Numbered from the whole stretch's first letter, positions 62,012 to 63,376 are shown. The stretch is DNA of 63,376 nucleotides, filler included, from Olpidium bornovanus S191 (GCA_017911155.1; 30 parts of 30 records of this genome joined end to end with filler, not necessarily neighbours in it); one strand, 5' to 3'. Notes: generated from the letters alone by a model not told the origin. Numbers and translations are program-made.

Positions 62012-62507
62012 ACGATCGTTTCGCCAAAACCTCAGAAGTTCCGAAAGGGACGCGCCGGTCGACAAACGCGAGACGGTTTTGCCGGGAAAGCGGGAAGGGG
62101 AGGAGGGAAACTGGCGGGGTGAGTCACGTGATCTACTGCCAACCGGCTCCTAATGTTTCTGAGTCGGGAAAGCCCCCGGCCTGGGCAAGTGCGACCGCTA
62201 AGGAAAATCTCGTTCTGACCCAGAAAATCCGGGAAATTGCTCTGCATTCCACCATTTAAAAGGCAGAATGCATGCNNNNNNNNNNNNNNNNNNNNNNNNN
62301 NNNNNNNNNNNNNNNNNNNTTAATTAATTAANNNNNNNNNNNNNNNNNNNNNNNNNNNNNNNNNNNNNNNNNNNNCCATCGGGTCAATCATCCAATGGAC
62401 GAGACGAGACGAGGTTTCTTTTTTGTTCTGCTGTCCTCTAGGCTAGCAAGTCTTTCCTATGGATGAGATCGCTTGGAAACCGTAACTTCCGTAACTTCTT
62501 AAGTCGC

Positions 62508-62780
62508 TCAATAGACCCCCTTCTTATATCCCTTTCCCTTGCCGTAGCCCCAGCCCCCCTTCTTGCCGAAGCCTTTCTTGCCGAAGCCTTTCTTGCCCTT
62601 GCCCTTGCCCCTCCCGAAACCGTAGCCTCCGTAGCCCTTGCCCTTGCCCTTGCCGAAGCCGTAACCGCCAAGGGGGAAAGGCTCCGGGGCGGGAGCCGGA
62701 GCGGGGTCAGGGTGGGGCTCGGCGCAGCTGACCTGGGCGAGGACGGCGATGGCGACGGCAATGATTACGGCAAACTTCAT
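62508..62780 (-). CDS. Secreted prepro-peptide: signal peptide, (X-Pro)8 propeptide, 54-aa Gly/Lys/aromatic cationic peptide
   Basis: Intronless ATG-to-TGA ORF MKFAVIIAVAIAVLAQVSCA-EPHPDPAPAPAPEPFP-LGGYGFGKGKGKGYGGYGFGRGKGKGKKGFGKKGFGKKGGWGYGKGKGYKKGVY; A at -3; varied synonymous codons argue against a simple DNA repeat. Confidence 0.9.
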   Translation of the reverse strand: MKFAVIIAVAIAVLAQVSCAEPHPDPAPAPAPEPFPLGGYGFGKGKGKGYGGYGFGRGKGKGKKGFGKKGFGKKGGWGYGKGKGYKKGVY

Positions 62781-63061
62781 CTTTTGCTTTTTTTGTGTGT
62801 ATTTGGCTTTCGGGAGACCTGGCGGAACGGGCTGAGGGAAGCCTTTGTTCGGTGAAGGGTGGTTTTTGCGGTGAAACGCCGCGCGAAGTTAAGCAGTCGG
62901 TTAGAGGGGAAAGGAGGTTGGAGATTTCGCCGACAGTCGAGCACCGCCTGCCCAGGGTTTGGCGGGAGGACAATCGAGGCCGCTTGGCGCCGCGGAGTCC
63001 CGCGCGGAGGTTACTTGGGCTTTTTACTTCCTTTTTTTTTTGTCTCTCCGCCGGCTCTGCC

Positions 63062-63179
63062 TGCGACCGGATGCGCCAGGAAAAACAGGTGCCCCACTCA
63101 CCTATTCGTCCGGTGGGTCAGCGACCGGATGCGCCAGGAAAAACAGGTGCCCCACTCACCTATTCGTCCGGTGGTCAGG
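63062..63179. repeat. 59-bp tandem duplication upstream of the secreted peptide gene
   Basis: gcgaccggatgcgccaggaaaaacaggtgccccactcacctattcgtccggtgg twice. Confidence 0.95.
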
Positions 63180-63227
63180 TTTTGTGGAATGGGCGGTGGA
63201 GAATGCCGGGACGGCGCGCGTCCGCGC

Positions 63228-63240
63228 GGTTTATATATGA
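63228..63240 (-). promoter_or_regulatory. Candidate TATA box (TATATAAAA on minus strand) for the secreted peptide gene
   Basis: Isolated AT-rich ttttatatat in GC-rich flank, about 450 bp upstream of the ATG, correct orientation. Confidence 0.45.
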
Positions 63241-63376
63241 CCCGGCGGCGCTCGGCGGCTTTTTTGGCGCCGCCCTTTGCCCAAGCTTTTTCGCGCGCGC
63301 ACGGTGTGTTCCCATCGTCAGCTGCCGCGTCGCGCGCCGCACCCCCCCCCCCCCCCCCCCCCCGCGAGCCAGGCCC

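Follow-up and report, generated by a model that had tools for sequence, protein, structure and literature searches.

A spliced, strongly transcribed gene for a predicted secreted glycine- and lysine-rich polycation preceded by eight in-register X-Pro pairs

Results

A two-exon gene on the minus strand

The window, meaning the whole stretch of DNA, is 63,376 nt long, and the piece examined here (62376-63376) carries a 90-codon, ATG-start open reading frame (ORF) on the minus strand at 62508-62780. This ORF belongs to a real, spliced and strongly transcribed gene of two exons. A TATA box read from the sequence (TATATAAA; 63230-63237, minus strand) would act as the promoter element; the RNA contig that reaches furthest ends 43 nt downstream of it, at 63194. 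Exon 1 (63102-63194, minus strand) is a non-coding 5' leader without ATG, delimited by a contig of RNA run X1 that covers 63101-63194 and continues at 62841; its true 5' end is at 63194 or further upstream. It is followed by a 259-nt intron in the 5'UTR (62843-63101, minus strand; GTGAGT...AAAG), recognized from the RNA joint between 62841 and 63101 and from the drop in depth across it, and then by the 62-nt 5'UTR part of exon 2 (62781-62842, minus strand), which was placed from the RNA contigs and the sequence and also lacks an ATG. The ATG of the ORF is the first in the mRNA, both leader exons being free of ATG, and it has an A at position -3.

The intron is documented by RNA from two independent studies. 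One RNA contig (run X1, study P1) links 62841 to 63101 with a joint depth of 770, and the 259 nt that it skips end, with the cut placed at +1, in CT..AC on the plus strand, equivalent to GT..AG on the minus strand, the orientation of the ORF. The junction 62842|63102 is present in RNA contigs of X1 (P1) and of X7 (study P3), and X7 has a loose end at 62844 (ATTCGTCCG) that continues into exon 1, at plus-strand 63104-63112 or at the copy 63161-63169. The word depth of run X1 was ~1400 on the exons (62522-62844) versus 11.5 in the intron (62842-63040), and RNA depth differed ~400-fold between studies (~1400 in one versus 3 in another). A 6% sample of the raw reads of RNA runs X21 and X15 gave no read on the piece, but the organism may have been missing from that sample, and this outcome carries no weight. 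The first-pass annotation had staked its reading on the existence of a transcript, and spliced, abundant RNA was indeed found (X1 and X7, with X2 over the 3' part). The GC3 of the ORF is 0.80, compared with a GC of 0.61 for the whole piece, and the sole strain difference within the ORF, at 62556, is synonymous (GGG>GGA, Gly75). The gene was present in runs of three studies labelled with one organism, and in soil metagenome and metatranscriptome runs. Because the intron is spliced and no prokaryotic relative was found in 185,579 genomes, a bacterial contaminant is excluded.

Downstream of the TGA stop codon (62508-62510, minus strand), the 3'UTR (62376-62507, minus strand) is truncated by the edge of the piece and was traced in runs X2, X5 and X9; the fraction of words recovered over 62376-62525 was 0.31 in RNA run X2, and 0.77 and 0.39 in DNA runs X5 and X9. 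Run X1 has nothing on 62376-62521, its contig ending at 62522, 12 nt short of the stop codon; the simplest guess is a possible strain difference at the C-terminus or in the 3'UTR. The 3'UTR also contains, at 62476-62493, an 18-nt relic (repeat family D4) that is identical at 16 of 18 positions to the YGGYGF-coding repeat of the CDS and is out of frame with the ORF, which hints that the coding repeat array was formerly longer.

The leader itself is duplicated. A 58-nt tandem duplication (63044-63101 and 63102-63159; 84% identity; repeat family D2) doubles the 5' splice donor, so that GACGAATAG|GTGAGTGGGG is present in two identical copies; a 52-nt exact repeat links 63064-63115 with 63122-63173. 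Exon 1 has about half the depth of exon 2 (770 versus 1433), as would fit if both donors may be in use. One X1 contig extends past 63194 by 19 letters that repeat the exon 2/exon 1 junction; that strain may have one more leader unit upstream, or the assembly may have looped through the 52-nt repeat. An Rfam match to sul1 inside the leader repeat (63104-63156, minus strand) scored 24.8 bits, below the gathering score of 36.2, and was taken as chance. Further upstream, ~105 nt from the TATA box and at the piece edge, there is a run of 22 C at 63342-63363 (22 G on the gene strand). On the opposite strand, a Leu/Ala-rich ORF of 130 codons (62463-62855, plus strand) was rejected, given that the splice signals and the TATA box set the minus strand; mirror ORFs of this kind are typical of GC-rich repeats.

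A three-part protein with ordered repeats

The translation falls into three parts. Codons 1-20 (62721-62780, minus strand) specify a predicted signal peptide of textbook form (MKFAVIIAVAIAVLAQVSCA), with the n-region MK, a hydrophobic core of 13 residues and S-C-A at -3 to -1, the cleavage site being placed by the -3/-1 rule. Residues 1-23 weakly match the myticin prepro signal region in Pfam (E 0.25, under threshold). Codons 21-36 (62673-62720, minus strand) encode eight X-Pro pairs with a net charge of -3 (EP HP DP AP AP AP EP FP), followed by Leu; proline occupies all eight even positions, no pair has a proline directly after it, and the register holds without a break between the predicted signal cut and the residue with which the Gly-rich part begins. 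Shuffling the 16 residues of this pro-region would place Pro at every even position with a probability of 1/12870. No two of the three Ala-Pro pairs share both codons (GCT CCG, GCT CCC and GCC CCG), indicating that the X-Pro periodicity is a property of the protein and not a fresh slippage repeat of the DNA.

Codons 37-90 (62511-62672, minus strand) encode the 54-residue Gly/Lys/aromatic polycation, hereafter the mature part, within which there are internal repeats of 15 nt and 39 nt (families D1 and D3). It consists of 25 G, 15 K, 1 R, 6 Y, 4 F, 1 W, 1 L and 1 V, with no D, E, C or H (G 46%, K 28%, aromatic 20%), and its tyrosines adjoin Lys or Gly. Its net charge is +16, its mass 5489 Da and its pI 10.4. 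Strict G-X alternation covers 35 of the 54 residues, compared with a mean of 4.2 in shuffled sequences, and none of 20000 shuffles reached 35; four KK pairs occur at mature positions 27, 32, 37 and 50, and GFGKK occurs twice. Both the pro-region and the mature part are ordered patterns that go beyond compositional bias. In the AlphaFold2 model, a helix at residues 3-18 is the only secondary structure (pLDDT 51-57), and since structure appears for the signal helix alone, the mature product is probably a flexible, disordered polycation. The first-pass annotation had described a 20-residue signal-like segment, eight X-Pro pairs and a 54-residue segment of this composition with a charge of about +16, and the translation agrees with that description residue for residue.

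Searches for relatives

No convincing homologue emerged among the collections searched, as judged from sequence comparison. In a Pfam scan of the protein, nothing rose above the curated cut-offs, the best being Myticin-prepro with 12 bits (cut-off 28.5) and Keratin_2_head with 9 bits (cut-off 28.2). A word-indexed search of 5.8 billion proteins contained neither the protein itself nor a relative; an Actinobacteria-like Pro/Ala-rich protein in that search (P0001, E 0.46) was set aside as a chance match. An exact look-up of the protein in public assemblies returned no gene with this product on record, and the gene appears to be missing from public annotation. Back-translated scans gave 423 pattern matches in JGI metagenome contigs and 279 in 185,579 bacterial and archaeal genomes, none of which was confirmed, so that the latter set yielded no prokaryotic relative or contaminant source. 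An exact scan of metagenome contigs with the duplicated 5' leader gave no match, and no paper on this design in zoosporic fungi was found in the literature.

Four matches were returned by phmmer from 1.84 billion representatives. The top one (P0002, E 1.2e-15) was rejected as a low-complexity artefact, being a 5020-aa E/K/P-rich repeat protein matched over 13 weak stretches. The other three, one from Penaeus indicus (P0003) and two metagenome proteins, share the same three-part layout with E values of 3.7e-5 to 6.3e-4, values that are to be read in the light of the low complexity of the sequences. BLASTP with composition adjustment against P0004 gave an E value of 4.9, and we therefore treated these look-alikes as analogues in design. 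In the ESM Atlas, the whole protein and the mature part retrieved only low-score Gly-rich look-alikes (0.5-0.71), under the level reached by shuffled sequences; those nearest to the mature part were structural Gly-rich proteins, namely cuticle and keratin-associated proteins (low scores of 0.5-0.63), and the plant glycine-rich wall proteins PF07172 were also among the look-alikes (low score of 0.65). It had been suggested beforehand that no characterised fungal family has this design, and this view is borne out by the absence of a Pfam family, of a named fungal relative and of the protein itself from the large collections. Likewise, Pfam, phmmer and the 185,579 prokaryote genomes offered neither a described family nor a contaminant genome in which to place it.

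Look-alikes in decapods and metagenomes

A profile built from the phmmer matches added ~30 look-alikes. The named ones are 'holotricin-3-like' peptides of Penaeus species and 'neuropeptide-like protein 29' of Cherax (P0008), the Penaeus indicus protein P0003 being XP_063597306.1; the others are unnamed peptides on AT-rich metagenome contigs. These names are automatic, and none of the retrieved look-alikes was found to be characterised; three short strings from their pro-regions occurred in no open-access paper. The look-alike contigs have 31-40% GC, compared with 61% for this piece, indicating that they come from quite different organisms.

The look-alikes are 60-100 aa long and have the same order of parts: a signal peptide, 4-11 in-register X-Pro/X-Ala pairs and a peptide of 30-55 aa with 40-59% Gly, many F/Y/W, basic residues, G-X alternation and almost no acidic residues. 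In ~35 of 37 look-alikes, Pro or Ala stands at every second pro-region position (for example AP EA DP NA EA DP, and MP DP DP VA DP). Two of them (P0027 and P0029) are multi-peptide precursors in which an X-Pro/X-Ala spacer comes straight after Lys-Arg between the peptide copies. Alpha-factor and hymenoptaecin have this layout too, and for them trimming by a dipeptidyl aminopeptidase is the accepted interpretation (PMC3415428; pmid 7002560 as cited in PMC5778000). The differences from our protein are nonetheless consistent. The basic residues of the look-alikes are Arg/His (0 K in nearly all), whereas here they are Lys (15 K, 1 R, 0 H); Ala often takes the place of Pro in their pairs, whereas the pairs here are Pro-only; and their pro-region nearly always ends in Asp-Pro before F/W, whereas here it ends in Phe-Pro before Leu. 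Because the homology evidence is equivocal, because Lys replaces Arg/His and because the Asp-Pro-aromatic junction is missing, we do not claim membership in the decapod 'holotricin-3-like' class for this protein. Many of the look-alike mature peptides end in Gly-Arg, and locus L003 (of L001-L006) carries a second small Gly/Arg-rich ORF at 3984-4154.

From these comparisons, the combination of a signal peptide, in-register X-Pro pairs and a Gly-rich polycation is a recurring natural design, which already exists in animals and is largely undescribed there. The first-pass annotation knew of no characterised fungal family with this design; its gene proved to be real and expressed and its three-part layout recurs, and the decapod look-alikes show that the design as such has a precedent.

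Discussion

A candidate dipeptidyl-trimmed pre-pro-peptide

By analogy with known precursors, we propose that the protein is a pre-pro-peptide whose X-Pro pairs would be removed by a Ste13/DPP-IV-type dipeptidyl aminopeptidase, leaving a disordered 5.5-kDa polycation with affinity for the anionic surfaces of microbes, and we put the probability of this reading at roughly 0.4. Signal peptidase would cut after Ala20; of the alternative signal cuts, the one after Ser18 keeps the X-Pro register and the one after Ala15 loses it. Positive charge directly after a signal peptide impedes export, and the eight X-Pro pairs would, while the chain is being translocated, hold the +16 segment off the signal peptide as a neutral-to-acidic spacer. 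The pairs would then be stripped, two residues per step, by a membrane-bound S9B dipeptidyl aminopeptidase (Ste13/DPP-IV type), and a 54-residue, unstructured, G-X-alternating polycation with LGGYGFG at its N-terminus would be released. Outside the cell, the Lys and aromatic side chains of this peptide would attach it to polyanionic surfaces; its likeliest targets would be the envelopes of competing microbes, with an action akin to that of the arthropod glycine-rich host-defence peptides.

Processing of this type has precedents. In the glycine-rich peptide hymenoptaecin and in yeast alpha-factor, Kex2 is read as making a first cut, after which a dipeptidyl aminopeptidase takes off the E/D-A/P pairs (PMC3415428); Kreil et al. 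showed in 1980 that promelittin is trimmed stepwise (pmid 7002560, as cited in PMC5778000), and the processing of fungal toxins and pheromones by proline-specific peptidases is reported in PMC8469457. The parity rule of the look-alikes is one that a dipeptidyl aminopeptidase demands of its substrate and that a simple Pro-rich linker has no need of. In Artemia, a glycine-rich cationic peptide was found to bind both membrane mimetics and bacteria and to render them permeable (PMC12387859). We favour a defence-type product because all of the design look-alikes fall in a class named after glycine-rich antimicrobial peptides, and because crustacean cationic glycine-rich peptides bind and permeabilise bacteria (PMC12387859; PMC5031766).

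Several observations weigh against a trimmed antimicrobial peptide. The likeness to the animal peptides may be one of composition only (BLASTP E 4.9), and the details differ, with Lys here versus Arg/His in the animal peptides and a Phe-Pro-Leu versus an Asp-Pro-aromatic junction. A pro-region of charge -3 is too weak to neutralise +16, so that a peptide kept inactive until it is trimmed is not self-evident. In addition, (X-Pro)n segments are also known as permanent rigid linkers, and the Atlas features of the mature part lie nearest to structural Gly-rich proteins (0.5-0.63).

Alternative explanations

The main rival to the antimicrobial reading, which we consider conceivable though rather unlikely, is that the product is a small, basic Tyr/Lys/Gly-rich protein serving as an adhesive on the surface or as a cross-linked component of the wall, where it would be cured by DOPA or dityrosine cross-links or held by charge. 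Such a protein would resemble the tubeworm cement proteins Pc-1/Pc-2 or mussel foot proteins 3 and 5, and its X-Pro part would perhaps be removed and perhaps be kept. The composition of the 54-mer suits this role (G 46%, K 28% and aromatic 20%, Lys rather than Arg, Tyr beside Lys or Gly), as does the precedent of Pc-1/Pc-2, which are basic, highly repetitive and built from few amino-acid types, with Tyr converted to DOPA (PMC4275877). The G-X alternation (35/54) would, in an extended chain, turn every side chain to the same side, much as in a silk-like sheet; the contrast in RNA depth between studies (1400 versus 3) is consistent with a stage-specific structural product; and the Atlas features lean weakly towards cuticle and keratin-associated proteins. 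On the other hand, no homology to adhesive or wall proteins appeared in the 5.8 billion-protein, phmmer and profile searches, the Tyr count is just 6, and every design look-alike found belongs to a class whose NCBI names derive from antimicrobial peptides; moreover, we know of no adhesive with a dipeptidyl-type pro-region. In a related and improbable alternative, the X-Pro segment would be kept for good, as a short rod of the polyproline-II type or a module for hydroxyproline glycosylation, as known from the hydroxyproline-rich wall proteins of algae and plants, and would carry a Gly/Lys/Tyr cross-linking tail. In its favour, (X-Pro)n repeats often serve as rigid linkers and glycomodules, algal-type wall chemistry would be compatible with the 1-kb piece taken alone, and the Atlas look-alikes include the PF07172 plant wall proteins, at a low score of 0.65. 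Sixteen residues are short for such a module, though, and contain no Ser-Pro or Pro-Pro motifs; its bounds coincide exactly with the predicted signal cut and the first Gly-rich residue, and the substitution of Ala for Pro in the look-alikes, with parity preserved, suits a peptidase substrate better than a rod.

The four Lys-Lys pairs at mature positions 27, 32, 37 and 50, together with the two occurrences of GFGKK, raise the question of a multi-peptide precursor, in which a basic-residue protease would cut at these pairs to release short signal peptides that include two GFG(KK) copies. True multi-peptide precursors exist among the look-alikes (P0027 and P0029), but these use Lys-Arg with a new X-Pro/Ala spacer after it, an arrangement absent from this protein. 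Lys-Lys is a poor Kex2-type site, and the resulting fragments would be tiny and nearly featureless, making this a very improbable account. Least probable of all, with only a slight chance in our view, is that the transcript is real and the ORF untranslated or without function, as a low-complexity frame in a GC-rich repeat. GC-rich low-complexity DNA does open long frames on both strands, as the 130-codon frame on the opposite strand illustrates; the protein is missing from the public collections searched, the X1 contig ends 12 nt before the stop codon, and there is no X1 on 62376-62521. Against these points stand the splice orientation and the TATA box, which set the minus strand, the opening of the ORF by the first AUG, which has a good context, and by a signal sequence of classical form, the GC3 of 0.80 and the synonymous strain difference, and the writing of the ordered X-Pro and G-X patterns with varied codons.

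Implications

What is known is that the design occurs in animals; what would be new, as far as sequence can tell, is its Lys-based form in an unexpected lineage and its absence from the protein collections searched. We tentatively suggest, with more doubt than assurance, that a eukaryote outside the animals with GC-rich DNA (if the first-pass annotation is right, a zoosporic fungus) has arrived independently at the recipe of animal venom and immune peptides, in a Lys-based version, and makes an abundant secreted peptide for defence or competition. If so, no earlier peptide of this design would be known beyond animals, and the class to which it points would be a largely undescribed one, given that its animal look-alikes have either no name or an automatic one. 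Dipeptidyl trimming combined with a glycine-rich polycation would then be a convergent way of exporting a highly charged peptide safely, extending well beyond insects, crustaceans and frogs, and soil microbial eukaryotes would make abundant gene-encoded peptides of the defence type that genome annotation has missed. The gene described here combines a 5'UTR intron with a low-complexity frame of 90 codons, and its product was found in none of the large protein collections. The search also exposed ~35 animal and metagenomic peptides with a strict parity rule in the pro-region. The 54-mer is short and easily made, and microbe binding and wet adhesion could be told apart by simple assays.

Comparison with known systems

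With respect to structural proteins, Pc-1/Pc-2 and mussel foot proteins 3/5 are secreted, basic, repetitive and dominated by Gly/Lys/Tyr (PMC4275877), as is this predicted-secreted peptide, but they have no X-Pro pro-region, their higher Tyr content is turned to DOPA and they are products of animal glands; no sequence match to them was found in the protein searches. Armadillidin, Artemia AfRgly1 and the nematode NLP-29 group are, according to PMC5031766 and PMC12387859, cationic, Gly/aromatic-rich and flexible peptides that bind membranes or surfaces, and their sequences and lineages are unrelated to this protein. The text of the armadillidin family paper (PMC7017220) contains no term for a dipeptidyl-type pro-region.

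The closest parallels in processing are promelittin, yeast alpha-factor (Ste13), hymenoptaecin and apidaecin, in which X-Pro/X-Ala pairs stand directly before the active peptide and, on the published reading, come off one pair after another (PMC3415428; pmid 7002560 as cited in PMC5778000), hymenoptaecin being likewise a glycine-rich defence peptide. None of these dipeptidyl-trimmed precursors is related in sequence to this protein, and their pairs are X-Pro/X-Ala, whereas those here are Pro-only. In alpha-factor and hymenoptaecin, the spacer comprises 2-3 pairs after a Lys-Arg or Arg-Arg cut, whereas this protein has eight pairs, which directly follow the signal peptide, as they do in promelittin. 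By analogy, we suggest that the protein would work like the precursors of melittin, alpha-factor and hymenoptaecin while looking like the decapod 'holotricin-3-like' peptides.
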